From contig NIVC01003114.1 of assembly GCA_002269645.1 (NCBI GenBank), positions 97,632-118,687 of the forward strand: 21,056 bases of DNA, in the 5' to 3' direction. The notes under the pieces are model-generated. The model ran no database searches. It had not been told where the DNA came from and worked only from the letters and a program-made list of their open reading frames with translations. Positions 1 to 21,056 of this stretch are shown in pieces (within the stretch, counting starts at the first letter, position 1; each line of letters starts with the position of its first letter). The stretch comes from Macrostomum lignano. Taxonomy: Eukaryota. A program made the translations under genes and the position numbers.

Positions 1-303
1 CGAGTCTACTGCCGTCTGCTTGATGGCGGCCGCTTGCCTACGCTCCGAGCGCCAAACGGCGAGTCACAGCCTCCGAACTGGGCAGTGAAGCGGGCCAAAT
101 GCCTGCAGCTCAGCGCCTGCACATCCGGCCGCTGGCTGGCCGAGAGCGCGCCTTCGAAATTCTTACGGTGATGGCCGACAGACTGTGGCGCTTAGCGCGA
201 CGACGAAGATTTAGACATGTGGATGAGCGCCTTTCTGGTGGCGCGGGCTGAACGGCGCGGAGGGTCTGGGGCCAATTCTAACACGGGCTGTTCTGTGCAA
301 TAG
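1..303 (+). CDS. 3' end of a probable PH-domain protein, with two apparent frameshifts
   Basis: Frame 1 RVYCRLLDGGR (1-33), frame 3 LAYAPSAKRR...LHIRPLAGRERAFEILTVMADRLWRLA (33-197), frame 1 DDEDLDMWMSAFLVARAE...VQ* (199-303). Joined, these resemble PH beta-strands plus the terminal helix with its invariant Trp. GC/CpG-rich sequence ends at TAG 301-303. Confidence 0.5.
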
Positions 304-367
304 TTTTCTTTTTGCTACCATTGATTGCTGCTTTTAGCTGGCTTTAGTAACATTTTCTTGTCGAGAT

Positions 368-790
368 CAATCAGCGACTAGCTGGATTCTCCCTGCTGAC
401 TAATCAGCGACTAGCTGGATTCTCCCTGCTGACCAATCAGCGACTAGTTGGATTTTCCCTGCTGACCAATAAGCGAATAGCTGGATTCTCCCTGCTGACC
501 AATCAGCGACTAGCTGGATTTTCCCTGCTGACCAATCAGCGAATAGCTGGATTCTCCCTGCTGACCAATGAGCGACTAGCTGGATTCTCCCTGCTGACCA
601 ATCAGCGACTATTGGTCAGCATTGGTCAGCTCACTGCTGACCAATCAGCGAATAGCTGGATTCTCCCTGCTGACCAATCAGCGACTAGCTGGATTCTTCC
701 TGCTGACCAATCAGCGACTAGTTGGATTTTCCCTGCTGACCAATCAGCGAATAGCTGGATTCTCCCTGCTGACCAATCAGCGAATAGTTG
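368..790. repeat. 33-bp minisatellite, about 12 copies (AATCAGCGACTAGCTGGATTCTCCCTGCTGACC)
   Basis: Directly visible tandem units; interrupted at 611-634 by inverted pieces. Confidence 0.97.
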
Positions 791-1747
791 AAGTTTCTCT
801 AAATTTTACATATATTTGTTTTCGTCCATGTTTTACTGTAAATCTCTTTTTAGAGTTCTGTTGATAATTTGCTAGGTAACATTCCAGTGTCGCAGTTTTA
901 TTAATAATTAATGTACTCCGTGCCACAATAATGAATTTTTTCTTGTGCTTGCTTTTGCCACCATACGCTTGTCGTGTTGCGACCTCTACGAGTCGTAAAA
1001 ATGTTTTTTCTTTTGCTGAAAATTACGAATAATAGTGTAATTCTGTCCGTCCCTATCTAATGCACATTTCTTGTTATCCTACTCTTCTACTGTCTAGGAA
1101 TTTACGAGTAGTATCTGTTGTGTTTTGTTTTCTGTATTAAAATTTGTTGACTGGTAATTATATCAGACTTTTGAAAACTTTTTCAGATCAAATGTTCTCT
1201 TGAAAGCTAATATCCCCGAGCTTTGTTCATACAATGGATGACTTTTTTCGTATAGAAATCATGCTGACTCCGCCCCTGCCATGACCAGACAGAACAATAT
1301 AATGCAATATAATGCAATATTTCAATTCAGCTTGCAGTTCACGCCTCAGTAAAAAACTCTTCAATGAGAACTGTAATCCGATATACTTAATATCACATAA
1401 AATCTGCGATTACATAATTAGGTAAATTAATTATTATTAGTATATTCGCATCGCGAACTGGATCATTAAACTGAGCAAAGCGCATCTCTTAGACAGGAAC
1501 TGATGAAAAATGAGAATGATATTTACACTGGAGAGACCAAGAAATGCAACACAACAATATTCCTAACTAAGAAGCTTCAAGAAGATTTGAGGCTAAAAGC
1601 AAAATAAAGGCTGCGTGTACTAACCCGACAAATCCTGCTTAACTTTTAGCGTTGAAGTCTGTAGCCATAGCCACTAAAATAAACGAATGCTTTAGCGGCA
1701 AAAATGCTCGCTAGCTACTATCAGTAGTTAAAAATATCTAAAATGAG

Positions 1748-1972
1748 TCATTCGACTCCGTGCGCGAATATCATCACAATGCCAGGCTCCAGCATCAGGC
1801 TGGGAGGCATGTGGCGATTCTCGCAGGCCAACAGCAGCACCGCCTGCTTGCCGGGCACCCGGCGAATCACGTAGCTGTCGTATTGGCGCCGGTTGGTCTG
1901 CCGCTGCTCCAGGGAGGCAACGCCGTCTGGCCAGCCGCGCTCGTGCGCTCGTCCATCAGCTCGGTTAGTAGC
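1748..1972 (-). CDS. RNF41: RNF41/NRDP1 exon 3 (C-terminal substrate/USP8-binding domain), with a 1-nt frameshift near 1950
   Basis: Acceptor CCCGCAG ends at 1973. Reads LLTELMD/AHERGWPDGVASLEQRQTNRRQYDSYVIRRVPGKQAVLLLACENRHMPPSLMLEPGIVMIFAHGVE*, matching the NRDP1 C-terminus (AHERSWP...EPGLVMIFAHGVE). Stop at 1748-1750. Confidence 0.93.
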   Translation of the reverse strand, partial: ATNRADGRAHERGWPDGVASLEQRQTNRRQYDSYVIRRVPGKQAVLLLACENRHMPPSLMLEPGIVMIFAHGVE

Positions 1973-2093
1973 CTGCGGGTTGCCGAAGTTTTGTATAGCA
2001 GCAAAGTAGCTAAACTCTTATACTGCTGCTGTCAGGAGTAAAACAGTAGTATGTGGGTGCATACTGTATTTTACAGTGCCTTTTAGGACTTTT

Positions 2094-2689
2094 ACAGCAG
2101 AGCACACAGCCCATGGCCCTCCAGTCACACAGCAGAGCACACAGTCCATGGCCCTCTAGTCACACAGCAGAGCACACAGTCTATGGCCTCCCCAGTCACA
2201 CAGCAGAGCACACAGTCTATGGCCTCCCCAGTCACACAGCAGAGCACACAGTCTATGGCCTCCCCAGTCACACAGCAGAGCACACAGTCTATGGCCTCCC
2301 CAGTCACACAGCAGAGCACACAGTCTATGGCCTCCCCAGTCACACAGCAGAGCACACAGTCTATGACCTCCCCAGTCACACAGCAGAGCACACAGTCTAT
2401 GGCCTCCCCAGTCACACAGCAGAGCACACAGTCTATGGCCTCCCCAGTCACACAGCAGAGCACACAGTCTATGGCCTCCCCAGTCACACAGCAGAGCACA
2501 CAGTCTATGGCCTCCCCAGTCACACAGCAGAGCACACAGTCTATGGCCTCCCCAGTCACACAGCAGAGCACACAGTCTATGGCCTCCCCAGTCACACAGC
2601 AGAGCACACAGTCTATGGCCTCCCCAGTCACACAGCAGAGCACACAGTCTATGGCCTCCCCAGTCACACAGCAGAGCAGTCTATGGCCT
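2094..2689. repeat. 36-bp minisatellite, about 16 copies, in RNF41 intron 2 (1973-2692)
   Basis: Unit CAGTCACACAGCAGAGCACACAGTCTATGGCCTCCC; begins a few nt after the GT donor at 2692-2691. Confidence 0.97.
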
Positions 2690-2692
2690 AAC

Positions 2693-3014
2693 CTGCTCGG
2701 ACAGCCAGTCTCGGCCAGCGACCGGCGCACCACGGCCTGCAGCACCAGGTCTGGTGTGGAGATGACGCCGCCCCAGCGGGCTACCCGCGCCAGCCGAAGG
2801 CTACGCGCCCAGGCCAGCTGAAGGCTCTCATCGCCAGCCATTGAGGCGTCCCGGCCGCTGATGGCAGGGCGGAGCGAGAGGGCAGCGGGGCCGGCGGGGA
2901 GATGCCGGCAGATAGCAGCTGCCTGCGAAGGTCGTGCACAGCTTGACGGAGCTCCGCCTGCTCGCAGCGCAGCTGGGAGACGATTTTGCTGTTTTTCTGC
3001 AATGCCGGGGAGGC
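2693..3014 (-). CDS. RNF41: RNF41/NRDP1 exon 2 (coiled coil and start of the C-terminal domain), with a frameshift around 2850-2910
   Basis: SKIVSQLRCEQAELRQAVHDLRRQLL in one frame, then DESLQLAWARSLRLARVARWGGVISTPDLVLQAVVRRSLAETGCPS in another (NRDP1 ARVTRWGGMISTPD). Acceptor AG ends at 3015 (alternative 2997); donor AG|GTTAGG at 2693/2692. Confidence 0.88.
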
Positions 3015-3019
3015 CTGGG

Positions 3020-3478
3020 CATCTGGGAGGCTGACCCAGCAACTGGGGATCTGGGAGGCTGCCCAGCAACTGACACTCTGGGAGGCTGGCCCAGCAACTG
3101 AGGATCTGGGAGGCTGGCCCAGCAACTGACACTCTGGGAGGCCGGCCCAGCAACTGGGGATCTGGGAGGCTGGCCCAGCAACTGGGGATCTGGGAGGCTG
3201 GCCCAGCAACTGGGGATCTGGGAGGCTGGCCCAGCAACTGGGGATCTGGGAGGCTGGCCCAGCAACTGGGGATCTGGGAGGCTGGCCCAGCAACTGAGGA
3301 TCTGGGAGGCTGGCCCAGCAACTCCGGATCTGGGAGGCTGGCCCAGCAACTCCGGATCTGGGAGGCTGGCTCAGCAACTGAGGATCTGGGAGGCTGGCCC
3401 AGCAACTGAGGATCTGGGAGGCTGGCCCAGCAACTGAGGATCTGGGAGGCTGGCGCAGCAACTCCGGATCTGGGAGCC
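3020..3478. repeat. 28-bp minisatellite, about 16 copies, filling RNF41 intron 1 (3015-3482)
   Basis: Unit GATCTGGGAGGCTGGCCCAGCAACTGGG, with ACTGAG/ACTCCG/ACTGACACT variants. Confidence 0.96.
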
Positions 3479-3482
3479 TCAC

Positions 3483-3923
3483 CGCCTGAATGTCGTCAAC
3501 AAGGAGCCGCAGTGCCCGCACGCAGCAGTGCTCAGCCAGCTGGTCGCTGGGCACCATGAGGCCGCAGCCGCTGCCGCAGGGCACGGGCCTGCTGGGATTG
3601 TACTCGCACTGGGCTGCGTGCTGAGCAGCTGAGGCCAGCTTGACCCGGGCGCCGCAGCCCAGCTGCTGGAAATCGCAGGCCACGTCGAGCCGGCTGAGCA
3701 GGTTGCGCAGAATTCTTGGCGCCGGTTTCAAATGCAGCGACAGCAACGGCTGCCGGTCAATGGGGCAGGTGGGGTTCAGCCGCAGCCACTGGTCGATGCA
3801 GCCGGTGCAGAAGGTGTGCTCGCAGTCCGGCGCCTGTACCGGAGCGTCCAGCACCCCGCCGCAGATCGGGCAGATCAGCTCTTCGTCCACTTCGCCTTCG
3901 AATCTCGCCAGCTCGAATCCCAT
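3483..3923 (-). CDS. RNF41: RNF41/NRDP1 E3 ubiquitin ligase exon 1 (C3HC4 RING plus SINA/TRAF-type zinc finger)
   Basis: MGFELARFEGEVDEELICPICGGVLDAPVQAPDCEHTFCTGCIDQWL...CPIDR...PRILRNLLSRLDVACD...CEYNPSRPVPC aligns to NRDP1 MGYDVTRFQGDVDEDLICPIC. ATG at 3923-3921; phase-0 donor GTGAGG at 3482. Confidence 0.95.
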
Positions 3924-3987
3924 GGCTGCGAGATTTGGGGAGCTGAGGACTGCAATCATCAGATGCAACCTAAGTTGCTCCCTGCAA

Positions 3988-4884
3988 CCTAACACTATCT
4001 GACACTGTGTCTGACACTACCTAACACTATCTGACACTGTGTCTGACACTACCTAACACTATCTGACACTGTGTCTGACACTACCTAACACTATCTGACA
4101 CTGTGTCTGACACTACCTAACACTATCTGACACTGTCTGACACTACCTAACACTATCTGACACTGTGTCTGACACTACCTAACACTATCTGACACTGTGT
4201 CTGACACTACCTAACACTATCTGACACTGTGTCTGACACTACCTAACACTATCTGACACTGTGTCTGACACTACCTAACACTATCTGACACTGTGTCTGA
4301 CACTACCTAACACTATCTGACACTGTGTCTGACACTACCTAACACTATCTGACACTGTCTGACACTACCTAACACTATCTGACACTGTGTCTGACACTAC
4401 CTAACACTATCTGACACTGTGTCTGACACTACCTAACACTATCTGACACTGTGTCTGACACTACCTAACACTATCTGACACTGTGTCTGACACTACCTAA
4501 CACTATCTGACACTGTGTCTGACACTACCTAACACTATCTGACACTGTGTCTGACACTACCTAACACTATCTGACACTGTGTCTGACACTACCTAACACT
4601 ATCTGACACTGTCTGACACTACCTAACACTATCTGACACTGTGTCTGACACTACCTAACACTATCTGACACTACCTAACACTATCTGACACTGTGTCTGA
4701 CACTACCTAACACTATCTGACACTGTCTGACACTACCTAACACTATCTGACACTGTGTCTGACACTACCTAACACTATCTGACACTGTCTGACACTACCT
4801 ACTACCTAACACTACGCTCGTATCTGACACTATCTGAAACTGTACCTAACACTCTGAAACTAATGTCTGACACTATCTGACACT
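3988..4884. repeat. 32-bp minisatellite, about 26 copies (some 30-bp variants), with a degenerate tail at 4815-4884
   Basis: Unit CTAACACTATCTGACACTGTGTCTGACACTAC, built from three related 10-12-mers. Confidence 0.97.
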
Positions 4885-4987
4885 TAAGCAACAAAAAAAA
4901 CAATTCAAAACAGAAAAAAACTTGTCCAAGCCTCAATACAAGCCAGTTAGTTGAGCACAAAACTGACATGGCGTATTCTATCGCTAA

Positions 4988-4993
4988 TTTATT
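4988..4993 (-). terminator. Putative polyadenylation signal (AATAAA) of RPS11
   Basis: AATAAA about 85 nt after the RPS11 stop, followed by a U-rich tract at about 4900-4925 on the minus strand. Confidence 0.55.
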
Positions 4994-5075
4994 TAATTGC
5001 CATGGCAACACAATCTGCCCCAACTCTGCAAACAAATTCCATTTGCCACACACACTAAATCAGTCAAAAGTTATT

Positions 5076-5522
5076 TTAAAACTTTTGAAACGAAGTCTTC
5101 TTACTGCCGCCGCGAGCTTTGCTGACTTTGATCACATTGAATGAGACCGTCTTGGACAGCGGCCGGCACTCGCCAACCGTCACAATGTCGCCGAGTTCAA
5201 CGTCGCGAAAGCAGGGCGACAGGTGCACGGACATGTTCTTGTGCCGCTTCTCGTAGCGCTGGTACTTTTGCACAAAGTGCAGATAATCCCTGCGGATCAC
5301 GATGGTGCGCTGCATCTTCATCTTGGTGACCACGCCAGTGAATATGCGGCCGCGGATGTGAACGTTGCCAGTGAATGGGCACTTCTTGTCAACGTAGCTG
5401 CCTTCGATGGCTTCGCGCGGCGTTTTGAAGCCGAGGCCGACATTCTTCACGTAGTGATTGCGGCGGCCCTTCTTGCCGCGCACCTCCTGCTTCTGGAAGG
5501 CTCGCTCGTTCAGTTCGGCCAT
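5076..5522 (-). CDS. RPS11: 40S ribosomal protein S11 (uS17), CDS without introns, 148 aa
   Basis: [74 protein letters not shown]...FQKF; uninterrupted ORF. Confidence 0.97.
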
Positions 5523-5588
5523 GGCTGACTAGGGATTTTCTTAGTTGCTAGGGGCGCTGAAATGAGTGCAGATCGACGCTGCTGAATT

Positions 5589-6515
5589 GCGATTCTTTGG
5601 CTGAGGGGCGATTCTTTAGAGTTGGCTGAGGGGCGATTCTTTAGAGTTGGCTGAGGGGCGATTCTTTAGAGTTGGCTGAGGGGCGATTCTTTAGAGTTGG
5701 CTGAGGGGCGATTCTTTAGAGTTGGCTGAGGGGCGATTCTTTAGAGTTGGCTGAGGGGCGATTCTTTAGAGTTGGCTGAGGGGCGATTCTTTAGAGTTGG
5801 CTGAGGGGCGATTCTTTAGAGTTGGCTGAGGGGCGATTCTTTAGAGTTGGCTGAGGGGCGATTCTTTAGAGTTGGCTGAGGGGCGATTCTTTAGAGTTTG
5901 ATGAAGGGTAATTCTTTAGAGTTGGCTGAGGGGCGAATCTTTTGAGATGGCTGAGGGGCGATTCTTTAGAGATGGCTGAGGGGCGATTCTTTAGAGTTGG
6001 CTGAGGGGCGATTCTTTAGAGTTGGCTGAGGGGCGATTCTTTAGAGTTGGCTGAGGGGCGATTCTTTAGAGTTGGCTGAGGGGCGATTCTTTAGAATTGG
6101 CTGAGGGGCGATTCTTTAGAGATGGCTGAGGGGCGATTCTTTAGAATTGGCTGAGGGGCGATTCTTTAGAGATGGCTGAGGGGCGATTCTTTAGAGTTGG
6201 CTGAGGGGCGATTCTTTAGAGTTGGCTGAGGGGCGATTCTTTAGAGTTGGCTGGGGGGCGATTCTTTAGATTTGGCTGAGGGGCGATTCTTTAGATTTGG
6301 CTGAGGGGCGATTCTTTAGTATTGGCTGAGGGGCGATTCTTTAGAATTGGCTGAGGGGCGATTCTTTAGAATTGGCTGAGGGGCGATTCTTTAGAGTTGG
6401 CTGAGGGGCGATTCTTTAGAGATTGATGAAGGGTAATTCTTTAGAGTTGGCTGAGGGGCGATTCTTTAGAGATGGCTGAGGGGCGATTCTTTAGAGTTGG
6501 CTGAGGGGCGATTAG
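5589..6515. repeat. 25-bp minisatellite, about 37 copies, upstream of the RPS11 ATG (possibly in a 5'-UTR intron, 5529-6555)
   Basis: Unit GGCTGAGGGGCGATTCTTTAGAGTT; on the minus strand, a GTGAGT donor at 6555-6550 and an acceptor CCCTAG ending at 5529. Confidence 0.96.
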
Positions 6516-7019
6516 AAGTTCAAATGAGACGCCAGACTTGAGCACATGTACTCACTCAGAATGTTAAAAATCGTTCATTTATATTTTATATTTTAACGGA
6601 ACCAGATTTCAAACAGTATTTAGTTGGTGGAGCAGGCAAGGCGAAGATGATAGATAGTTAAGGTATGAATAAAACTGAAATGATAGTTAGATCGCTAAAA
6701 CTACTACTGACAGTAGCACAGTAGATTTATTAACTGAGTAGCCAGATATGAAAGTGCAAACCAGACACTGCAAAAGACAAATAACAGGGCATGCATTCTA
6801 TTAAGCTAAAAATTAATATTAAATAACTATTGGTAAAGCAGATTTGTTTTTTAGTTGATCAGCTAAAAGCATTTTTGTTTTGCTATTAACCTGTGTAAAA
6901 GCAGTGTTTCAATATTCAAATAGGACATGTTGAAAAATGGTCTAGTCCAGAATATAACACACAAGGAGCTTTGCATGTAATTAATTATTATAATTATGAT
7001 TTGTTCCTGCTTAGATAAA

Positions 7020-7985
7020 AGTGCGCCCATGTCTACAATATTCATGGCGCCAAAACCCCATGTTTATAGTATTCAAGGCGCCAAAACCCCATGTCTACAA
7101 TATTCATGGCGCCAAAACCCCATGTCTACAATATTCATGGCGCCAAAACCCCATGTCTACAATATTCATGGCGCCAAAACCCCATGTCTACAATATTCAT
7201 GGCGCTAAAACCCCATGTCTACAATATTCATGGCGCCAAAACCCCATGTCTACAATATTCATGGCGCCAAAACCCCATGTCTACAATATTCATGGCGCCA
7301 AAACCCCATGTCTACAATATTCATGGCGCCAAAACCCCATGTCTACAATATTCATGGCGCCAAAACCCCATGTCTACAATATTCATGGCGCCAAAACCCC
7401 ATGTCTACAATATTCATGGCGCCAAAACCCCATGTCTACAATATTCATGGCGCCAAAACCCCATGTCTACAATATTCATGGCGCCAAAACCCCATGTCTA
7501 CAATATTCATGGCGCCAAAACCCCATGTCTACAATATTCATGGCGCCAAAACCCCATGTCTACAATATTCATGGCGCCAAAACCCCATGTCTACAATATT
7601 CATGGCGCCAAAACCCCATGTCTACAATATTCATGGCGCCAAAACCCCATGTCTACAATATTCATGGCGCCAAAACCCCATGTCTACAATATTCATGGCG
7701 CCAAAACCCCATGTCTACAATATTCATGGCGCCAAAACCCCATGTCTACAATATTCATGGCGCCAAAACCCATGTCTACAATATTCATGGCGCCAAAACC
7801 CCATGTCTACAATATTCATGGCGCCAAAACCCCATGTCTACAAAATTCATGGCGCCAAAACCCCATGTCTACAATATTCATGGCGCCAAAACCCCATGTC
7901 TACAATATTCATGGCGCCAAAACCCCATGTCTACAATATTCATGGCGCCAAAACACGACTTCTAAACATTTGGCGCCAAAACTCC
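7020..7985. repeat. 31-bp minisatellite, about 30 copies, between the BAG gene 3' end and RPS11
   Basis: Unit CATGGCGCCAAAACCCCATGTCTACAATATT; degenerate ends. Confidence 0.97.
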
Positions 7986-8111
7986 ACGTCTTCAAATGGA
8001 TGCCTTCCTTTAAAAAAACAGCATTCTTTAATTAGCACGGCTAAGGAACAAAATACGCTAATTCTTAGGTAGGAATAATTTGTATCAAAGGTTAATAAAG
8101 GTAATAGAAAA

Positions 8112-8289
8112 TCAGTTAGCCTGCTGTTGCTGCTCAGTAGAGGAAGAATCGGAAGAACCAGCTGCATTGGCGGCCGCTTTCATCTCCAGATAGTCTAGCA
8201 GAGACTGGATGTACTGCACACAGGCTTTCCTGGCATCGCGCACGTCCGACTCTCCAGCGGATTCGATAGCGTCAAGCTTCATCATGAGT
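8112..8289 (-). CDS. BAG3: BAG3-like co-chaperone exon 4 (BAG domain helices 2-3)
   Basis: Acceptor TTCGCAG ends at 8290; R|LMMKLDAIESAGESDVRDARKACVQYIQSLLDYLEMKA...QQAN*; stop at 8112-8114; ATTAAA at 8027-8032 (minus strand). Confidence 0.88.
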
Positions 8290-8453
8290 CTGCGAAATAT
8301 GCAATATTAAGTATTATGATTGCTCTGGAGAACGCATCGTGCTGAATGGGTTTTCGGTTGATAAAAAATCCAATTTCTCGAGAGCATACTAAATGCATTG
8401 TTGATACAAGTACACCTTCCTTATCTGCCTTCAGATCATTTCTAAGGAATTCG

Positions 8454-8886
8454 ATGAGTGCCTGCAGCGCCAAAATGAGTGCCTGCAGCGCTAAAATGAG
8501 TGCCTGCAGCGCCAAAATGAGTGCCTGCGGCGCCAAAATGAGTGCCTGCTCCGCCAAAATGAGTGCCTGCTCCGCCAAAATGAGTGCCTGCGGCGCCAAA
8601 ATGAGTGCCTGCGGCGCCAAAATGAGTGCCTGCTCCGCCAAAATGAGTGTCTGCTCCGCCAAAATGAGTGCCTGCGGCGCCAAAATGAGTGCCTGCGGCG
8701 CCAAAATGAGTGCCTGCGGCGCCAAAATGAGTGCCTGCTCCGCCAAAATGAGTGCCTGCGGCGCCAAAATGAGTGCCTGCAGCGGCAGAATGAGTGCCTG
8801 CGGCGCCAAAATGAGTGCCTGCAGCGCCAAAATGAGTGCCTGCGGCGCCATAATGAGTGCATGCGGCGCCAAAATGAGTGCCTGCC
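8454..8886. repeat. 21-bp minisatellite, about 20 copies, in BAG intron 3 (8290-8946)
   Basis: Unit GCCAAAATGAGTGCCTGC(GGC/AGC/TCC). Confidence 0.96.
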
Positions 8887-8946
8887 TGTGGCGCCCCTGC
8901 TGCGAGTTAACTAAGTCAGTATATTCGACTAAACTCATTGCTTCAC

Positions 8947-9122
8947 CTGGTTAGAGTCTCCTCCAACAGTCGGTACTGTTTCTCTTCGGGCCCGCCAGCG
9001 TAGGCCTTGATGTCGGTCTCAAGTCGTCGGCTCTCTGCTTCGACCGCTTGGATTCGTTCGAGCGCGCTCTGCACTATGGGAGAGGGCGAGCGGCTGCGAG
9101 CGGCTGCGTGAGGGCCGTCCAC
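8947..9122 (-). CDS. BAG3: BAG3-like exon 3 (BAG domain helix 1)
   Basis: VDGPHAAARSRSPSPIVQSALERIQAVEAESRRLETDIKAYAGGPEEKQYRLLEETLT; acceptor GGCAG ends at 9123; phase-2 donor AG|GTGAAG at 8946 joins exon 4 in frame. Confidence 0.87.
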
Positions 9123-9270
9123 CTGCCGAGTGTTGTAAGTGCGTTTTGACAAAACTATAAATTCGATATGCTTGGTAGGAAGGGTCGCTAACTGAGCAGT
9201 GCTGGTTGTGATCGCTGTGAGGTCCACATTCCACCAGACATCATAAATTACACACAATGTCAAGACAAAC

Positions 9271-9408
9271 CTTTAATCCTGTACTTCGCGACTCCCGGCC
9301 AGCACCAGAGCTCCCGTAACCTCCGTCTCCTCCAGCGCTGCCTCCGCCGCCATCTACGCTGCTGTACATCTGCGGCGGAGCGGCAACCACAACAGCTGGT
9401 CGGCTGGG
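9271..9408 (-). CDS. BAG3: BAG3-like exon 2 (Gly/Ser/Pro-rich linker)
   Basis: Acceptor AATTTCAG ends at 9409; PSRPAVVVAAPPQMYSSVDGGGGSAGGDGGYGSSGAGRESRSTGLK; donor AAG|GTTTGT at 9270; 138 nt, phase 0/0. Confidence 0.75.
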
Positions 9409-9442
9409 CTGAAATTGGGAATGTTGTAAACTAGTTGGTAAT

Positions 9443-12400
9443 TCATTCTTGTGGTAGATTAGGGGCGGATTCTTGTGGTAGGTTAGGGGCGGATTCTGTG
9501 GTAGGTTAGGGACGGATTCTGTGGTAGGTTAGGGACGGATTCTTGTGGTAGGTTAGGGACGGATTCTTGTGGTAGGTTAGGGACGGATTCTTGTGGTAGG
9601 TTAGGGACGGATTCTGTGGTAGGTTAGGGACGGATTCTTGTGGTAGGTTAGGGACGGATTCTTGTGGTAGGTTAGGGACGGATTCTTGTGGTGGTTAGTG
9701 GCAGATTCTTGTGGTAGGTTAGGGGCAGATTCTTGTGGTAGGTTAGGGCGGATTCTTGTGGCAGATTAGGGCCGGATTGTTGTCGTAGGTTAGGGGCGGA
9801 TTTCTGTCGTAGATTAGGAGCGGATTCTTGTGGTAGGTTAGGAACGGATTCTTGTGGTAGGTTAGTACGAATTCTTGTGGTAGGTTATGGGCGGATTCTT
9901 GTGGTAGGTTAGGGACGGATTCTTGTGGTAGACTGGGGGCGGTTTCTTGTGGTAGGATAGGGGCGGATTCTTGTGGTAGATTAGGGGCGGATTGTTGTCG
10001 TAGGTTAGGGGCGGATTTCTGTCGTAGATTAGGAGCAGATTCTTGTGGTAGGTTAGGTTAGGGGTGGATTTTTGTGGTAGGTTACGGACGGATTCTTGTG
10101 GTAGGTTAGGGACGGAATCTTGTGGTAGGTTAGGGACGAATTCTTGTGGTAGACTGGGACGGTTTCTTATGGTAGGATAGGGGCGGATTCTTGTGGTAGG
10201 TTAGGGACGGATTCTTGTAGTAGGTTAGCGACGGATTCTTGTGGTAGGTTAGCGACGGATTCTTGTGGTAGGTTAGGGGCGGATTCTTGTGGTAGGTTAG
10301 GGACGGATTCTTGTGGTAGGTTAGGGACGGATTCTTGTGGTCGGTTAGGGACGGATTCTGTGGTAGGTTAGGGACAGATTCTTGTGGTAGGTTAGGAGCG
10401 GATTCTTGTGGTAGGTTAGGGACGGATTCTTGTGGTAGGTTAGGGACGGATTCTTGTGGTGGTTAGGGGCAGATTCTTGTGGTAGGTTAGGGGCAGATTC
10501 TTGTGGTAGGTTAGGGCGAATTCTTGTGGCAGATTTGGGGCGGATTGTTGTCGTAGGTTAGGGGCGGATTTCTGTCGTAGATTAGGAGCGGATTCTTGTG
10601 GTAGGTTAGGGACGAATTCTTGTGGTAGACTGGGGCGGTTTCTTATGATAGGATAGGGGCGGATTCTTGTGGTAGGTTAGGGACGGATTCTTGTGGTAGG
10701 TTAGGAGCGGATTCTTGTGGTAGGTTAGGGACGGATTCTTGTGGTAGGTTAGGGACGGATTCTTGTGGTGGTTAGGGGCAGATTCTTGTGGTAGGTTAGG
10801 GGCAGATTCTTGTGGTAGGTTAGGGGCAGATTCTTGTGGTAGGTTAGGGCGGATTCTTGTGGCAGATTAGGGCCGGATTGTTGTCGTAGGTTAGGGGCGG
10901 ATTTCTGTCGTAGATTAGGAGCGGATTCTTGTGGTAGGTTAGCAACGGATACTTGTGGTAGGTTAGTACGAATTCTTGTGGTAGGTTATGGGCGGATTCT
11001 TGTGGTAGGTTAGGGACAGATTCTTGTGGTAGGTTAGGGACGGATTCTTGTGGTAGGTTAGGGACGGATTCTTGTGGTAGGTTAGGGACGGATTCTTGTG
11101 GTAGGTTAGGGACGGATTCTTGTGGTAGGTTAGGGACGGATTCTTGTGGTAGGCTAGGGCGGATTCTTGTGGTAGGTTAGGGACGGATTCTTGTGGTAGG
11201 TTAGGGGTGGATTTCTGTCGTAGATTAGGTGCGGATTCTTGTGGTAGGTTAGGGACGGATTCTTGTGGTAGACTGGGGGCGGTTTCTTGTGGTAGGATAG
11301 GGGCGGATTCTTGTGGTAGATTAGGGGCGGATTGTTGTGGTAGGTTAGGGACGGCTTCTTGTGGTAGACTGGGGGCGGTTTCTTGTGGTAGGATAGGGGC
11401 GGATTCTTGTGGTAGATTAGGGGCGGATTGTTGTCGTAGGTTAGGGGCGGATTTCTGTCGTAGATTAGGAGCAGATTCTTGTGGTAGGTTAGGTTAGGGG
11501 TGGATTTTGTGGTAGGTTACGGACGGATTCTTGTGGTAGGTTAGGGACGGAATCTTGTGGTAGGTTAGGGACGAATTCTTGTGGTAGGTTAGGGACGAAT
11601 TCTTGTGGTAGACTGGGGCGGTTTCTTATGGTAGGATAGGGGCGGATTCTTGTGGTAGGTTAGGGACGGATTCTTGTGGTAGGTTAGGAGCGGATTCTTG
11701 TGGTAGGTTAGGGACGGATTCTTGTGGTAGGTTAGGGACGGATTCTTGTGGTGGTTAGGGGCAGATTCTTGTGGTAGGTTAGGGGCAGATTCTTGTGGTA
11801 GGTTAGGGACGGAATCTTGTGGTAGGTTAGGGACGAATTCTTGTGGTAGACTGGGGCGGTTTCTTATGGTAGGATAGGGGCGGATTCTTGTGGTAGGTTA
11901 GGGACGGATTCTTGTGGTAGGTTAGCGACGGATTTTTGTGGTAGGTTAGCGACGGATTCTTGTGGTAGGTTAGGGGCGGATTCTTGTGGTAGGTTAGGGA
12001 CGGATTCTTGTGGCAGGTTAGGGACGGATTCTGTGGTAGGTTAGGGACGGATTCTTGTGGTAGGTTAGGAGCGGATTCTTGTGGTAGGTTAGGGACGGAT
12101 TCTTGTGGTAGGTTAGGGACGGATTCTTGTGGTGGTTAGGGCAGATTCTTGTGGTAGGTTAGGGGCAGATTCTTGCTGTAGGTTAGGGCGGATTCTTGTG
12201 GCAGATTAGGGCCGGATTGTTGTCGTAGGTTAGGGGCGGATTTCTGTCGTAGATTAGGAGCGGATTCTTATGGTAGGTTAGCAACGGATACTTGTGGTAG
12301 GTTAGTACGAATTCTTGTGGTAGGTTAGGGGCGGATTCTTGTGGTAGGTTAGGGACGGATTCTTGTGGTAGGTTAGGGACGGATTCTTGTGGTAGGTTAG

Positions 12401-13805
12401 GGACGAATTCTTGTGGTAGACTGGGGCGGTTTCTTATGGTAGGATAGGGGCGGATTCTTGTGGTAGGTTAGGGACGGATTCTTGTGGTAGGTTAGGAGCG
12501 GATTCTTGTGGTAGGTTAGGGACGGATTCTTGTGGTAGGTTAGGGACGGATTCTTGTGGTGGTTAGGGGCAGATTCTTGTGGTAGGTTAGGGGCAGATTC
12601 TTGTGGTAGGTTAGGGGCAGATTCTTGTGGTAGGTTAGGGCGGATTCTTGTGGCAGATTAGGGCCGGATTGTTGTGGTAGGTTAGGGGCGGATTCTTGTG
12701 GTAGGTTAGGGACGGATTCTTGTGGTAGGTTAGGGGCGGATTTCTGTCGTAGATTAGGAGCGGATTCTTGTGGTAGGTTAAGGACGGATTCTTGTGGTAG
12801 ACTGGGGGCGGTTTCTTGTGGTAGGATAGGGGCGGATTCTTGTGGTAGATTAGGGGCGGATTGTTGTGGTAGGTTAGGGACGGCTTCTTGTGGTAGACTG
12901 GGGGCGGTTTCTTGTGGTAGGATAGGGGCGGATTCTTGTGGTAGATTAGGGGCGGATTGTTGTCGTAGGTTAGGGGCGGATTTCTGTCGTAGATTAGGAG
13001 CAGATTCTTGTGGTAGGTTAGGTTAGGGGTGGATTTTTGTGGTAGGTTACGGACGGATTCTTGTGGTAGGTTAGGGACGGAATCTTGTGGTAGGTTAGGG
13101 ACGAATTCTTGTGGTAGACTGGGGCGGTTTCTTATGGTAGGATAGGGGCGGATTCTTGTGGTAGGTTAGGGACGGATTCTTGTGGTAGGTTAGCGACGGA
13201 TTATTGTGGTAGGTTAGCGACGGATTCTTGTGGTAGGTTAGCGACGGATTCTTGTGGTAGGTTAGGGACGGATTCTTGTGGTAGGTTAGGGACGGATTCT
13301 GTGGTAGGTTAGGGACGGATTCTTGTGGTAGGTTAGGGACGGATTCTTGTGGTAGGTTAGGGACGGATTCTTGTGGTAGGTTAGGGTGGATTCTTGTGGT
13401 AGGTTAGGGCGGATTCTTGTGGTAGACTGGGGGCGGTTTCTTGTGGTAGGATAGGGGCGGATTCTTGTGGTAGATTAGGGGCGGATTGTTGTCGTAGGTT
13501 AGGGGCGGATTTCTGTCGTAGATTAGGAGCAGATTCTTGTGGTAGGTTAGGTTAGGGGTGGATTTTGTGGTAGGTTACGGACGGATTCTTGTGGTAGGTT
13601 AGGGACGGAATCTTGTGGTAGGTTAGGGACGAATTCTTGTGGTAGACTGGGGCGGTTTCTTATGGTAGGATAGGGGCGGATTCTTGTGGTAGGTTAGGTA
13701 CGGATTCTTGTGGTAGGCTGGGGCGGTTTCTTGTGGTAGGTTAGGGGCGGATTCTTGTGGTAGGTTAGGGACGGATTCTTGTGGTAGGTTAGGGGCGGTT
13801 TCTTG
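9443..13805. repeat. 24-bp minisatellite, about 180 copies with higher-order structure, in BAG intron 1 (9409-13885)
   Basis: Unit GATTCTTGTGGTAGGTTAGGG(A/G)CG; recurring blocks of variant units. Confidence 0.97.
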
Positions 13806-13852
13806 GGGCAATGTGGTAGACACTTGGGTTAGCAACTAATTTAAAAAATTCA

Positions 13853-14182
<330 letters not shown>

Positions 14183-15259
14183 TTATATATTTATATCATA
14201 TTGCTAGCTCATTCTATTTTTAGCTTATTATTTCTTTAAAAAACAAAAAATTGTTCAAATAGAAGCGAATTTGTGAGTGAGTTACCAACTTGGGAGTTAA
14301 AGAGAAAGGCCTAGCCTAAGTATTTCAAGTAGATGTTGAAAATTGTATTCAAGTCTTAGTTCAGACTGCTAATTCTGAGACTGCTAAGCAGCCTAGGCTA
14401 CTTACAAAATCTAGAAGAAAAAGATATTGCAAAAGATCCCACTTTAGTGTCACGTGTTTGAATTTGGAAAAGCCACTTAGGAATTTTGCAATCTATAATA
14501 AAACTAGAAGTTCTCCGAAGCCTTACATTCATAGGTAAGTAACAAGTATTTTGATATTATTTCTTCTTGTAGCCTAATACTCAATATACTAAATAGAGTT
14601 AAGTTAAATTAGAGTTATTCAATCTCAACTTAATGTTAACTAGCCTATATACTCTTTAAGTTTTTTTTAATTCTATTATTATTAATTAATGAACACTATT
14701 AATTTCAATAATAGCTACAAAAGACTTCTAAATACATATTTACTCTAGGCACCATAAAGATTAAGCTAGATTTATGCCCCATTTTGTCTGTCCAAACTGC
14801 CTTGTTGTGCAGCAGCTGTTGGCTTATAGGAGTCAATAGAAAACATAAGCGCCTCAGAAATAGCCTTTGATGGAGGATTCAGTGGCTTAAGCCATTACTG
14901 CTATTGCTACTATTAAAGATATTGAAGATATACTTGCCACTGTTCAAGCTATTGATAAGGACATATTGGGTAAAACAGAAAGTTCTTATGGTTTTTGAAG
15001 TTTCCTATGAAATGAAGTATATATAATAGTTGAAGTAATAACTATAGCTGAAACTTGAATTTGGGTTGCTCTACATCAGTCAATGGCTTTTTTATACCTC
15101 TGCACACATGGCTTCTAGAAATTCTATAGTCTATCTTCAAAAACTGAGAACTTTCTGTTTTATCCAATACCTAGCTATACTGCTACTACTGCTGTTATTG
15201 AAGACTACTACTCTTTCCAAGAATGGTAGAGGTCAGAAAATGTCTGGCCGCACCTTCTA

Positions 15260-18200
15260 AATGGTGGCTTATTTATCCAACTGAGCTTCACGGCTCTGTA
15301 ATATTTGTCATTTTCTTTGCAAATAAGCCATTTTATTTGCATACCTATGCAAGTAGTGCTGACACCTGGTATTGCAGCCAGATCATGAGATCACTAGACT
15401 ATACATGTCCTTGGTTGGCTTGCACAGGTGCACCTTAGCTGCAGGGACACACAGAGGTCAGTGCAATATACAATATCACACTGAGCAATGATATGAGTGC
15501 AACCAACAAGGGCCACTCCGTGGTATTGCAGGCACCTGTTGCCTCCAGTCCCTGCTATTTCAACTATGGATATGCTAGGTGGTGCTGTGGACTATGAGGC
15601 CAATCTTTATCTGGCCCCAGCTATACCAGGTGGTTGCCTTAGACTCAGTACAATGAACTGCCAAACTCTGAAAGCCCCTGGCATTATATCATTCTTTGCA
15701 TACCTATGCAAGTAGTGCTGACACCTGGTATTGCAGCCAGATCATGAGATCACTAGACTATACATGTCCTTGGTTGGCTTGCACAGGTACACCTTAGCTG
15801 CAGGGACACACAGAGGTCAGTGCAATATACAATATCACACTGAGCAATGATATGAGTGCAACCAACAAGGGCCACTCCGTGGTATTGCAGGCACCTGTTG
15901 CCTCCAGTCCCTGCTATTTCAACTATGGATATGCTAGGTGGTGCTGTGGACTATGAGGCCAATCTTTATCTGGCCCCAGCTATACCAGGTGGTTGCCTTA
16001 GACTCAGTACAATGAACTGCCAAACTCTGAAAGCCCCTGGCATTATATCATTCTTGTCCAGTTGACCTATGACCTTTAGCTAGAACTCATTATGCTGTAA
16101 GTTTCTATTGTGGCTGAGCTGAGGCTCCACTCTGAGGACCTTAAAGCCAGCTGGAGCCTTTTGTACATATTGGCAAACAACTGCAATTGGGGCAGTGTTG
16201 CCATACTGATCAGACTGTCCTTTCAACAAAGTATGCACTGCACTTCACTATATGCCTACTGCATCTGGTTGTTTTTTGCATATGTATCCACTGTTATTCA
16301 TCCCAAGGAGGCTTGTGCCTTTTTTTAACTTCCTGGCTGGGCAGCTAGAAGAGGTGCCAAACTACAACATACTGGCAGTGCTCCGAGACCTGAAGGCAGT
16401 TCTGTGGAGGTCCAAGCACTAGCCCTTTATTGCAGGATACAAGAATGCTAATACCAATGCACTAGAAGATCTGCTTGAGTGGCTAGACCTGGTGTCTGCA
16501 AACATCCAGTTCTGCAAGCCCCCTGCCAATCTGGTTACCATTGCAGGCTGCAATAGGTGATAGAATGCATGCCGGCAGAATGCCACAAAGAGACTGGTGC
16601 AACTCAATGGTATACTGGTTAACACTCATGAGCACCACTGTGCTACTAACTGCGACACTATGGCTCCACTGACTCTCTAGTCAGACTATTGACTTCTGCT
16701 CTGCAACTTGTAGCTCCACAACTAGCTCTACCAACTGCCAAAGCAGTAGCAATGGTATTACTATTGTACTCTGTTGGACACCCACATGAAGCATCAATTT
16801 GTAGGCACTTTTGTCAGTGATCTTGGAGACTAGCACAAGGCAGAATATTCCAACATTAGCACTACCATTAGAGCTGCTGCAGAGCACAGTCCCACTGATA
16901 TGGCCAGTGCAGAAATTGCTACCTGTCTGGCAGTGACCTGACTATCAGGCAGGTACAGAACATTGAGTGACTCTACAGAAACTGGCAGCCCACAGGCAAC
17001 ACTAAAGATATGTTTAAGCACCTTCTAAATGAGTGGCAGCAGGCCACTGTTGATGATGCCATCTAGTCCATCATTGTAGCCAGTCCCAAATGAAGAGCTA
17101 AGCAGTGTAGATGGCCATCCAGACCCTGATAGGATAAAATAGATGCAAAAAGTGTGTGGCACTGAACCTAGCCAGCAACACCCTAGTAGAGCACAGGAAT
17201 GAATTGCACAACTTCTTTGCTAGCACTATGAATGCACCTGCATTGCTGCTACTTGCCAATTTTGGGCTTCCACTGAACATGCCACTCCTAGCTAAGGACT
17301 TTTGCACCAGCCCAGTCACCACAGAGTATGTTGTGCTACTTGCTCAAAACATTAGGCGACAAGGCACTTGGCCCTAATAGCCCTAACAATCAAAGTGCTA
17401 CAGCTCTGCTATGTGAACTCCCAGGTGACAAGCATCATGCACTATATGTTAGCTGGCACCCTGCACCCAAGTGGACTATTGGGCATATTGTTCTGATCCC
17501 AAAGAAGACAGGGACAATGTGGAAAGAAGACCATTGCCAGTACCAGATCTTGCTGATCTCCCACACTGCAAAGCTCTTCAAGCAGCTGCTGCTCAATTGC
17601 CTATAGTTGGTGCTGGATCTATACCTGCAAGTACAAGTACAAGCAGAATGGATTCTGGCTATAATGTGGTACAGTGACAGATCCTTACACTCTGCCGTCT
17701 CTACTGTATCATTAAGGAGGCATGTATCCACCAGTCTATACTTATCATTGACTTCATTGACTTTCAAAGGCATTTGACTTGGTGTTGAGAGCCACACTTT
17801 CCTTTGTCCTTTGAGCCTACAAGGTACCTTAGCAACTAATTGACATTGTCATGGCACTGTATTATAACACTTGAGCTGCTTTGGTGATAGTAGATGGCCT
17901 ATTTGACCTGTTTAACACTTCATCAGGAGTTCTGCAGGATGACACATTGGCACTGTTCCTCTTCATGCTGCTACTGGAATGAGTGCTTTGGACCACAATC
18001 TCCTTGGCTGATGTTGGCTTCTTGCTGCACAGAAGAATCAGTCACCACCAAAGCAAAAAGTGTGAGCATGCTTGGCTATGCCAACAACCCCACCCTCCTG
18101 TCCTTGTCTGTTGAAGGCCCTTGCACCAGATCAACAGGCTAGTTGAGGTGGCATTGAGTGTCAGTCTGGTTGTCAACACGCTGATGACTGAGGTGCTGAC

Positions 18201-18885
18201 TATGCTGGCAAACATCCTAGTAGACCTGACATGCCACAGTGTAGACAGGCAGATGAGCAAGCTTGCACATTGCTAGCAGTTCACCTATCTTGGCGGTGTG
18301 GTGCCCCTCATGGATGAAGACCTCTGGTAGCATAGAGGACTTACCTGTGGCCTTCATTTGATCTAGGCCATCACCCAGTCCAAAGTGCTGGCTGACCACC
18401 ACAGGGCTTGGCTGTGACAGGTGGTGGTTGAAACTATCCTGCTCTACAATGCCCAGATGTGGATGCTAATGGCTACACTAGAGTGGCAGCTAGATTGGCA
18501 CACTTAGGTCTGCTCTGTGTAGCCATTTGAGCTGACAAGAGCATTGGGACCAAAGCCCTATACAATTGGGCCAAGCTACAGTGCCTGTCTATTATCTTGT
18601 GCTAGCTACAACTTCAACTCGTAGGCCATGTGATCTGCACCAAGGGTTACTGCACCCAACCTATTTAGGATGTTCTGCTGCTCACTTTGCCAGTCCCATT
18701 CAGGTGGGGTCAGGCCTAAACCCATCAATATGTAGACTGCCTCCTACACAATGCTGGGGTGCCCAACATTGCCAATGGGATAGACTTTCTATACTCTTAG
18801 GCTCTGCAACAGGCCATCTGATGTACCTTGTTATAACTATGACCTTGCATATGGGGCTATATAATCTATTGTTATTGTTGAATAT
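15260..18885 (+). mobile_element. Dead non-LTR retrotransposon (APE endonuclease + reverse transcriptase, RTE-like), heavily mutated by transitions
   Basis: Decayed motifs: LRLSTMNCQTL (15997-), GSVAILI, VLRDLKA, SDY*LL (16681-), GHIVLIPKK, ILLISHTAKLF, KQNGFWL*CG (17641-), FIDF/KAFDLV (17767-), GVLQDDTLALFLF (17926-), LGYANN (YANN 18077-18088, from YADD), FTYLGG, VVETILLYNAQMWMLM. ORF end at about 18821; TTG/TAT-rich tail at about 18867-18885. The 5' boundary and clade are uncertain. Confidence 0.9.
15336..16055. repeat. Tandem direct duplication of a 359-bp unit at the LINE 5' end
   Basis: 15336-15696 and 15695-16055 are identical except G15430/A15789. Confidence 0.95.
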
Positions 18886-19215
18886 GTTGAAGTTGCCTTG
18901 CTAAACACTTTAGTCTCAAAATATATAAAAATATATAAATTATAAAATAATTTCAGCTTAGCAACAAAGTTATTTGACTATCCCTAATAGTATGGCAGGA
19001 CTACTGCCCTATAGGAGCTTATTTGACTAATACTTGTGCCACCCTACCAAGTAGGTGAACAGACTAAGGGCATAAGGCATAGCTAAGAAATTTTCTTTGG
19101 GAAGAGGATAGTCTTAGGGGAAAAGTCTTCCTGAACTAGACTCTAGATAGAACCAAATGGAAAAAGTGACATTTTCCTGGAACATGCATCTGGCACATTT
19201 TTTTAATTTCAGGTC

Positions 19216-19323
19216 AGTGTGGCGCGGCATAGCATAGTGTAGGAGGTCATGCACACAGTGCAACACAGTGGCCCAGCACAATGCAAGCGCAACATAATGC
19301 AGCGCAGCATAGTGCAATGCAAC
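19216..19323. repeat. Two short degenerate pentamer tracts (RRYRY; GGCGC/AGCGC-like)
   Basis: agtgt ggcgc ggcat agcat agtgt (19216-19240); agcgc aacat aatgc agcgc agcat agtgc aatgc (19286-19320). Confidence 0.6.
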
Positions 19324-21056
19324 AAGGAAATATTTATGCAGTGTGATACAAAGCAGCGTGGCAGCTTGGCGCACTTTTTAGGCTAAATTTTTGGCCTCAA
19401 CACACTTTTAAGCTGAAGGCTATCACTTCTTGGCGCACATCCAAGCAGTTTGTACAAAAATCCCAATTGAATAGATAGATAGGCTTCTAGCTAATTTGGC
19501 AACAAGCCAATTTAGTAATAACCATTGAGCTATGCATTTCCACAGTCCATTACAATAGACAAAAACTCAATAGATTGAATCCAAATGATAATATATATAT
19601 GCTAGACTGGCTAGACTACATACTTGAATAATTTATTTTTATTTTTATCCCTCTTTTGTATATCTATATTTTACAAAACTAACTTAACTTTATGTTCCCT
19701 TTATTTATTCTTTCTATAGCATAGCAATCATATGACTTGATAGCTTTATCTGATAGCAGTTGCAAATGAGCCTTTGAGTGGAAAACAGTTCATTATGCAT
19801 ATACATATATTTATGATATACAATATATATAATATCTATACTTTTGCAACAAAAAGTGCAAAGTGTAAAAGTCTTAGTACAAAATACAATTCAACCAGGA
19901 TTTTTTATGTTTAGTCTATTCAATAATTGTTCTTAGTGTCTCAACACTTGTTTTACTATATGCTTTAGGCCTAAGCATATGTGGCTTATACTAGGCCTAG
20001 GAAAAACATGTGATATGTATGTGGTAGTTGGTTATTACTTTGGCTAATTTTAAAATCTAAATAAACATGCAAACACAACTCAATGGATGACAAATTATAG
20101 CACTGTTTTAACTGCCCCCTCATATGTTGCCAAACTGACTATTGCTATTGCCAAATTGCTTGCCTGTTGCTAAGTCAACCTGTAGAATAAGATCTTATCA
20201 ACCAAACAAGGGATCTTAAAAAACCAAACATACAAATGACTTTCATTTTTATTGTCTCATGAGGAATATATTTTAGGAGTCTAAAAAAGTAACATATCAT
20301 TTGAAAGAGATATTCTCATCTACAAAATGAGATAAAGTTTTGACAATCTACTCAATAGATACTGACTGATACTCGAGGTCAAGAATAGGCCATAAGTAAA
20401 CAAAGTGCAATAAAGTTAAGCAACTATTCATTTGAAAGAAAAAATGTTTTGAACAACTTTGGGGTAGTTTTATTTTATTACATATAAAAAAATGCTATGT
20501 ATAAGAGAATGTCGAAAAATGACACTTTTATGACATGTTCAGTTGATGAATCTTACCCTACCAAAGCCAAACTGCCAAATTAACTGGTTCCCAAAGGACA
20601 GATGGTATACCTCATAACTGTACACTGGAAAATTTTGGTGTACAGAGGGATCTGGCATACACTATTGTGAACTATTGGCATACAAATTGGTGTATGCCTA
20701 CAAAGGGTCAAAGGGCCTGGTGTACTGCATTGTACTGTCTGTACCCTTGTGTACAAGCTCAAGCTTGGTGTATAGAGATCGCTGAGACAGCAAGAGGGAT
20801 TAGCCTAGGCCTAATTGTTCTGAATCCGAACCAATAAACATATTTGCGTACAAAAAATACAAGTTAAAGTTTGGAATAGTCTCTATATGCATAGATGGAG
20901 CAAACTAAAATTGTTTCAGAAAAATATAGTACGGAAAATTTTTACTAGTGTAACGTCGTCGCTTCTGTATTGAAAATGTTCAATTTCGTATTTATGGTTT
21001 TTTTGCAATTAATATTTAAAACTATATCTATTTTGGTCTAATGTTTGTAACTTATT

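Follow-up and report, generated by a model that had tools for sequence, protein, structure and literature searches.

CpG decay of an old LINE in a transposon-bearing intergenic domain of the Macrostomum lignano genome

We analysed a stretch of 21,056 nucleotides from the flatworm Macrostomum lignano (assembly GCA_002269645.1, contig NIVC01003114.1, positions 97,632 to 118,687 of the forward strand; hereafter the window). At 15260–18885 on the + strand it carries a decayed long interspersed nuclear element (LINE) of 3626 nt, a non-LTR retrotransposon whose single open reading frame (ORF) encoded an apurinic/apyrimidinic endonuclease (APE) and a reverse transcriptase (RT). The element has lost nearly all of its CpG dinucleotides, most probably through deamination of 5-methylcytosine (5mC) while an old copy lay in a methylated, transposon-rich intergenic domain. 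An earlier note, made from the sequence alone, had proposed a mutagenic defence against transposable elements (TEs), either very dense germline methylation that included non-CpG sites or an active deaminase or methyltransferase akin to that of fungal repeat-induced point mutation (RIP).

The element contains 11 CpGs where 198.1 are expected (observed/expected, o/e, 0.06; Poisson P ∼ 5e-69; GC 46.8%). The earlier note had counted ∼ 10 against ∼ 190 (o/e ∼ 0.05), and its counts, coordinates and composition proved accurate on recount. The CpG shortage is paired with a reciprocal surplus of TpG (o/e 1.69) and CpA (1.48), and TpA stands at 0.89. TpA/ApT is 0.91, compared with 0.70–0.85 in intact relatives, and (CpA+TpG)/(ApC+GpT) is 1.64.

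Three-frame translation of 15260–18885 gives an endonuclease and reverse-transcriptase ORF that is legible yet broken. A Pfam scan of this translation (stops as X) returned no matches, and homology was therefore drawn from phmmer and tblastn. With the stop-masked RT region, phmmer found P0001, a 621-aa protein from a JGI metagenome, as the best intact relative (52% identity, E = 9e-86), and the same search also matched one M. lignano UniRef protein. The tblastn alignments with P0001 and P0014 (1047 aa, PF03372 endonuclease and PF00078 RT) together span 15919–18818, with shifting frames and abundant stops; the earlier note had rightly recognized a destroyed LINE. P0014 aligns collinearly over 15919–18734, so that the endonuclease precedes the RT on the same strand. 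Protein identity of the remnant to P0001 and to the M. lignano fragments P0095, P0076 and P0105 is 50–65%. Once an internal 359-bp duplication is discounted the element measures ∼ 3.27 kb, a putatively RTE-like size and layout. Its parts are as follows.

15260–18885, + strand: decayed LINE, 66–69% nucleotide identity to the intact relatives L001, L090, L091 and L092, CpG o/e 0.06
15336–15694, + strand: copy 1 of the 359-bp tandem duplication, which holds the LINE ORF start (ATG GAT ATG... at 15566)
15695–16053, + strand: copy 2 of the 359-bp tandem duplication, whose ORF start (15925) reads on into the endonuclease region
15919–16890, + strand: N-terminal apurinic/apyrimidinic-type endonuclease remnant (tblastn, P0014 residues 72–407)
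17322–18495, + strand: reverse transcriptase remnant with the motifs IVLIPKK, KAFDLV, LALFLF, YANN and MWMLM; relatives carry PF00078
18498–18821, + strand: conserved C-terminal region to the ancestral stop (P0001 residues 515–621 align to 18498–18818)

Downstream of the ancestral stop, the 3′ end is rich in A/T, with a AATATATAAA-like stretch, as far as ∼ 18885–18950. No convincing direct repeat that could serve as a target-site duplication was found at either side of the element. A single base distinguishes the two 359-bp copies (15430 G versus 15789 A), which are in the same state of decay; the duplication is thus later than the CpG loss. As a separate observation, the 14 nt at 15250–15263, on the presumed 5′ edge of the LINE (GCACCTTCTAAATG), recur exactly at 17018–17031 in its interior. 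The chance expectation for such matches in that 4.2 kb is ∼ 0.03, and the match may be rearrangement microhomology or a coincidence.

As a proxy for the ancestor we used the DNA of four intact relatives that are mutually 81–84% identical: L001 from JGI 3300038379, and L090, L091 and L092 from ENA ERZ27299534, ERZ27314298 and ERZ27299524. Their GC content is 58–65% and their CpG o/e 0.98–1.06. Three intact-looking M. lignano fragments (P0095, P0076 and P0105), which sit in chimeric gene models, are 81–89% identical to P0001 in the RT region at the amino acid level. At the positions that read W/C/H/Q/stop, N, L, M/I and L/F in the window, they have kept R, D, P, T and S. The LINE family is CpG-rich, and the CpG-poor state of the window copy is therefore derived. 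The substitution spectrum rests on this one copy from the M. lignano genome. A search of M. lignano loci totalling 110 kb found no further copy of the family, the M. lignano relatives P0007, P0076, P0095 and P0105 could be tied to no recorded contig, a protein search seeded with an M. lignano fragment linked no M. lignano LINE copies to NCBI contigs, and a metagenome scan using very general RT motifs returned mainly distant LINEs, L010 alone being close. CpG-rich intact members of the family recur in several environmental metagenome assemblies, whose source organisms may be meiofaunal flatworms. The M. lignano UniRef models P0076, P0095 and P0105, which bear MUS81, RT-domain or MULE-domain annotations, read through internally deleted LINE copies.

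Changes on the window lineage were scored at 1801 alignment positions on which two or more of the intact relatives concur; requiring agreement of at least three leaves the numbers unchanged. C>T (173) and G>A (164) dominate, against 9 A>G, 10 T>C and 70 changes in the eight transversion classes pooled. CpG sites have changed at 55% per strand, equivalent to a 98% loss of the dinucleotide. Among 167 invariant ancestral CpGs, 64 became TG, 58 CA and 29 TA, 13 took other forms, and three were retained (16653, 18179 and 18294); the other CpGs of the window copy are newly arisen or lie outside the alignment. The loss of ancestral CpG gives 2kt = 4.0, i.e. a CpG transition kt of ∼ 2.0 per strand compared with 0.137 for non-CpG C>T, and a rate ratio of ∼ 15. 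The hits outside CpG to which the earlier note had pointed do exist, but they are far rarer than it implied: CpA>TpA reaches 17.9% (28/156), and C>T reaches 11.3% at CpT and 10.2% at CpC. CpA exceeds CpC and CpT combined 1.7-fold (Fisher p = 0.03). C>T/G>A across all cytosine contexts amounts to 12.8% per site, against 3.3% for A:T>G:C. We found no CHG signal (H = A, C or T) in the LINE (CHG 10.7%, CHH 13.5%, p = 0.45) and no other trinucleotide signature; a CHG-type methylation signature was rejected on these figures.

The earlier note had inferred the ancestral codons from family motifs. The CpG-rich state of the family's ancestor shows that real mutations took place, and codon-level comparison with the four intact relatives upheld each change that we revisited. 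At 18077–18088, TAC GCC GAC GAC has become TAT GCC AAC AAC (YADD>YANN). TTC GAC TCG GTG has become TTT GAC TTG GTG (KAFDSV>KAFDLV), GCG CCG TTC reads GCA CTG TTC (LAPFLF>LALFLF), and ACG TGG ACG CTG ACG reads ATG TGG ATG CTA ATG (TWTLT>MWMLM). At ∼ 16687, GAC CAC/CAT has changed to GAC TAT (SDH>SDY), and CGG CCC CAG/CGC CGC to TGG CTA TAA TGT (GFRPQRG>GFWL*CG).

Along the element, TG and CA outcomes follow each other in random order (runs test z = −0.88), as do all C>T and G>A events (z = +1.27). CpG hits are therefore independent and the strands symmetric; the runs tests gave no strand-coordinated tracts, as would be left by a processive deaminase.

The CpG shortage reaches at least 3 kb of non-LINE DNA on the two sides of the element. 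L009, a locus on contig NIVC01000854.1, is collinear with window 1–14254 at 87–96% identity and has no LINE. The homology stops at 14254, and there the sequence switches abruptly from CpG-normal to CpG-poor.

13850–14182, − strand: first coding exon of a BAG-like gene, encoding a WW domain, on the CpG-normal side of the boundary
13806–14254: WW-exon side, 21 CpGs against 24 expected, o/e 0.88
14255–15259: left flank, AT-rich (33% GC), 5 CpGs against ∼ 28, o/e 0.18, unalignable to L009
18886–21056: right flank, AT-rich (34% GC), 17 CpGs against ∼ 62, o/e 0.27
19451–20350: part of the right flank, 0 CpGs against 19.5 expected, o/e 0

Unique DNA in 1–14254 has a CpG o/e of 0.96. In the 5.1 kb of unique DNA common to the window and L009, transitions have occurred at 2.6% of CpG positions and 1.8% of positions elsewhere; CpGs in genic DNA are therefore not hypermutable. 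Upstream of the BAG-like gene, L009 has DNA without homology to the window that is likewise CpG-poor (o/e 0.12–0.5 per kb). This DNA (L009 1–4440) contains a second CpG-poor transposon remnant, that of a piggyBac-type transposase, at L009 2369–2611 on the − strand (PF13843, E = 3e-6). The pattern is thus one of a CpG-poor, transposon-bearing intergenic domain that adjoins CpG-normal genic DNA. Spread of the decay into the WW exon was considered and rejected, as the residues there that look like R>C are common to L009. The right flank also holds an island of 7 CpGs at 19181–19450 (o/e 0.48, 46% GC) with imperfect GCAGCGCAACATAAT-like repeats.

The age of the copy was judged from damage other than transitions. 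It carries 25 private indels (19 deletions and 6 insertions, absent from the relatives), 16 of them frameshifting; L001 and L090 have one gap between them. Relative to the codons of L001 there are 19 in-frame stops, among them CAG>TAG (five), CGN>TGA/TAA/TAG (nine) and TGG>TGA/TAG (three). Transversions amount to ∼ 3.9% and indels to 8.6 per kb, a load that matches or tops the neutral divergence of the window–L009 pair, at 2.3% transversions and 9.6 indel events per kb. The copy is an old pseudogene rather than a fresh insertion struck by a burst of mutation. In an old copy, a rate ratio of ∼ 15, within the ∼ 10–50x expected of 5mC deamination, would suffice to explain the CpG loss. The earlier note had itself named the spectrum of ordinary slow CpG decay in very old copies as an outcome that would refute its own reading, and the observed spectrum fits this description.

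Two rough backgrounds are available for the remaining classes. The eight minisatellite arrays of the window, polarised against their consensus units, show C:G>T:A at ∼ 2 times the per-site level of A:T>G:C and a transition:transversion ratio of ∼ 1. The other is the comparison of window 1–14254 with L009. Against these, the A:T>G:C and transversion levels of the LINE look normal. The window/L009 comparison itself gives 99 transitions to 117 transversions (0.85), ∼ 9.6 indel events/kb and ∼ 4.2% substitutions; divergence so rich in transversions and indels is unusual for an animal.

The spectrum, the strand symmetry, the signs of age, the regional extent and the absence of CpG hypermutability in the adjoining genic DNA are observed; methylation as the cause, and its targeting to transposon-rich or intergenic chromatin, is inferred from them. 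The probable course of events is as follows. A full-length, GC- and CpG-rich LINE would have inserted ∼ 1 kb upstream of the BAG-like gene in the M. lignano lineage and remained for a long time in a transposon-rich intergenic domain, where its CpGs would have been methylated in the germline by a DNMT1/DNMT3 system. Spontaneous deamination of 5-methylcytosine to thymine would have turned each CpG into TpG or CpA, depending at random on the strand, with CpG C>T running at ∼ 15 times the level of other cytosines until ∼ 98% of CpGs were gone. AT-biased background mutation would have added the non-CpG transitions, the transversions, the indels and, late, the 359-bp tandem duplication. According to reviews, M. 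lignano retains both DNMT1 and DNMT3 (PMC11292947, PMC9246332, PMC10658182), and methylation-driven CpG decay that spreads into flanking DNA is described for vertebrate transposons (PMC7431005). Because genic CpG o/e is ∼ 1 and genic CpGs are not hypermutable, methylation would have to be mosaic and aimed at intergenic and transposon DNA rather than genome-wide. The case is a clear one of CpG decay of the methylation type, but ordinary in its mechanism, which is not new.

Several observations weigh against deamination of methylated CpG as the full account. TpA makes up 17.7% of the lost CpGs, which matches the 17.9% expected if loss was early or fast, although the slow expectation (∼ 14%) lies within sampling error. 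Non-CpG C:G>T:A is 2–3x above the two rough local backgrounds, with wide error bars; plain CpG methylation predicts neither this excess nor the CpA bias. The excess could stem, among other causes, from a low level of methylation outside CpG, from ancestral CpGs that went unrecognized, or from mutation that depends on chromatin. Relatives from metagenomes, and not a same-genome consensus, stand in for the ancestor. Finally, global 5mC is low in adult M. lignano according to PMC11292947, PMC9246332 and PMC10658182, which cite Wasik et al. 2015.

The excess outside CpG raises a broader alternative, which we consider unlikely: that M. lignano has a cytosine-modification system aimed at TEs and intergenic DNA whose footprint extends beyond CpG, in effect an animal counterpart to genome defence by mutation. 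Such a system would methylate the germline CpGs of TE domains almost to saturation, stop sharply at the 5′ ends of genes and leave no footprint in gene bodies; weaker, CpA-leaning non-CpG methylation or enzymatic deamination would in addition raise C>T 2–3x at all cytosines.

A RIP-like process would be triggered by the repeat itself and would change C to T enzymatically, through a DNMT-like protein or a deaminase, soon after insertion and with a preference for CpG rather than CpA. Some of the data would suit it. Neurospora-type RIP (RID-dependent, CpA>TpA) likewise inactivates repeats by two-strand transitions that leave many stops, and in the LINE CpG loss is almost total, transitions prevail, CpA>TpA is modestly in excess, early loss would agree with the share of TpA in the lost CpGs, and TpA/ApT lies barely over the 0.89 rule of thumb. 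RIP is, however, indicated by (CpA+TpG)/(ApC+GpT) of ≤ 1.03 and by TpA/ApT of ≥ 0.89 together with TpA enrichment. At 1.64 the substrate index of the LINE is far from this value: CpA and TpG are enriched, i.e. they are products and not substrates. The product side is ambiguous, with TpA/ApT above the 0.70–0.85 of the relatives but a TpA o/e of only 0.89. The target in the LINE is CpG. RIP would keep to the duplicated sequence apart from limited leakage, but the shortage is not bounded by the repeat and affects 14255–15259 and 18886–21056 too. The 70 transversions in 1801 sites and the 25 private indels are of the kind that comes with age, unlike the near-pure transitions of RIP, and the runs tests showed no strand-coordinated tracts. 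Neutral damage is at the level of an old pseudogene, and a fast process is therefore not needed. We know of no RID-type enzyme in animals. A parallel is the TpCpG-biased hypermutation of basidiomycete TEs, in which C>T is focused at CpG in the transposons of a methylating genome (PMC3318451). That system is fungal, RIP and 5mC deamination are debated as its cause, and homology dependence is not evidenced for the LINE. Taken together, we regard a RIP-like origin as very improbable. The mechanism of the earlier note survives in part. Its first option, dense methylation of germline CpGs with subsequent deamination of 5mC, fits the evidence; its second, a RIP-like system or active deaminase, is unsupported in view of the substrate index, the small CpA excess, the lack of tracts, the flanks and the age of the copy.

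Editing by a cytidine deaminase of the AID/APOBEC type, acting either on the cDNA of the LINE in the course of retrotransposition or on its genomic DNA, would account for the C>T/G>A excess in every cytosine context, and vertebrate APOBEC3-type editing of cDNA does hypermutate retroelements in this way. Such editing is, however, strand-asymmetric, clustered and directed at non-CpG motifs, and the LINE shows none of these features. The near-equal C>T and G>A counts contradict the one-strand bias predicted for cDNA and so exclude strand-biased cDNA editing, as the earlier note had correctly argued from two-strand damage. Hits on the same strand are not clustered (z = +1.27), specificity is overwhelmingly for CpG and not for TpC- or CpC-type motifs, and no trinucleotide context, CHG included, leaves a signature. 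Editing of the LINE before integration also leaves the depletion of the flanks inexplicable. We therefore give this explanation little credence.

A sequencing or assembly artefact is highly implausible. It could be suspected because the nearest locus, L009, is only 87–96% identical and lacks the LINE segment. Known artefacts do not turn CpG into TpG and CpA on both strands while sparing the adjacent 14 kb, in which 293 CpGs (o/e 0.96) of the same sequence are intact, and coherent indels and a clean tandem duplication accompany the pattern. A bisulfite-like artefact was rejected, as it would spare methylated CpG, the opposite of what the LINE shows. The notion that the family was CpG-poor by descent or selection, with a CpG-free active consensus and few mutations, accounts for the low CpG count and nothing else, and can practically be dismissed in view of the CpG-rich intact relatives, the R/D/P/T residues held by the M. 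lignano fragments where the window has W/C/Q/stop/N/L/M, and the 19 in-frame stops and 16 frameshifting indels of the window copy.

Most invertebrates methylate gene bodies and not transposons. Deamination of methylated CpG in the LINE finds its nearest counterpart in the decay of L1, L2 and Alu elements of vertebrates (PMC7431005), which shows the same two-strand change of CpG to TpG and CpA with a reciprocal TpG/CpA excess, a CpG rate ∼ 10–20x that of non-CpG sites, spread into flanks, and o/e values of old copies far below the genome average. The flatworm host differs from vertebrates in its low global 5mC and in neighbouring genic DNA with CpG o/e ∼ 1 and no CpG hypermutability; at 0.06, the o/e of the LINE is at the extreme end. 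TE-targeted mosaic methylation is on record for some nematodes and arthropods and for the sponge Amphimedon (PMC8226279, PMC9246332), and in Cnidaria it has been approached through CpG o/e (PMC8857923). As in those invertebrates, repeat methylation is deduced here in a host with DNMT1 and DNMT3, and CpG o/e serves as a historical footprint, an approach already used for repeats in other invertebrates (PMC8857923, PMC8226279). The difference is that such methylation is undescribed for free-living flatworms (PMC9246332), and the M. lignano evidence consists of one locus and one paralogous locus. The earlier claim that nothing of this kind was known in invertebrates was thus too strong in general (PMC8226279, PMC8857923, PMC7431005), but it was fair for free-living flatworms, whose genomic 5mC pattern was called unknown in 2022 (PMC9246332).

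To the left of 14254 the window is genic and rich in minisatellites. An intronless ribosomal protein gene of the S17/RPS11 type lies at 5079–5522 on the − strand. Among ten ORFs of the window searched by exact sequence, this one alone had a record. Its ORF is identical in sequence on NIVC01000854.1 of GCA_002269645.1, and M. lignano PAA proteins belong to its 90% cluster, in agreement with the animal host given in the earlier note. L009 shares the minisatellite arrays of the window and the WW-domain exon of the BAG-like gene; judged by sequence, the two would be paralogous or allelic regions, or another assembly. Extension of L009 upstream by way of a spliced WW-gene product gave no single-intron solution. 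The eight minisatellite arrays (periods 21–36 bp) fill ∼ 60% of the first 14 kb (368–13805), the biggest being a 24-bp unit repeated ∼ 182 times at 9445–13805. Several lie within the span of the BAG-like gene (exons ∼ 14113–14009 and 8291–8160), and most retain a CpG o/e of ∼ 0.9–1.1. The RPS11/S17-type gene occurs in at least six M. lignano loci (L004–L009) with 94–100% coding identity. Synteny with the BAG-like gene, a related minisatellite and a PKD-like gene is kept among them; apart from this, the non-coding DNA of the window and L009 cannot be aligned with that of L004–L008. These loci are consistent with old duplicated (polyploid-derived) regions.

The sequence footprint of this locus provides a lead, suggesting that M. 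lignano directs its heritable methylation to intergenic DNA rich in transposons. The edge of the domain is sharp at the gene 5′ end, and the adjoining genes and intronic minisatellites are without CpG decay. If this holds genome-wide, M. lignano, in which RNA interference and transgenesis are feasible, would be an invertebrate model for TE-directed methylation and its mutational cost.

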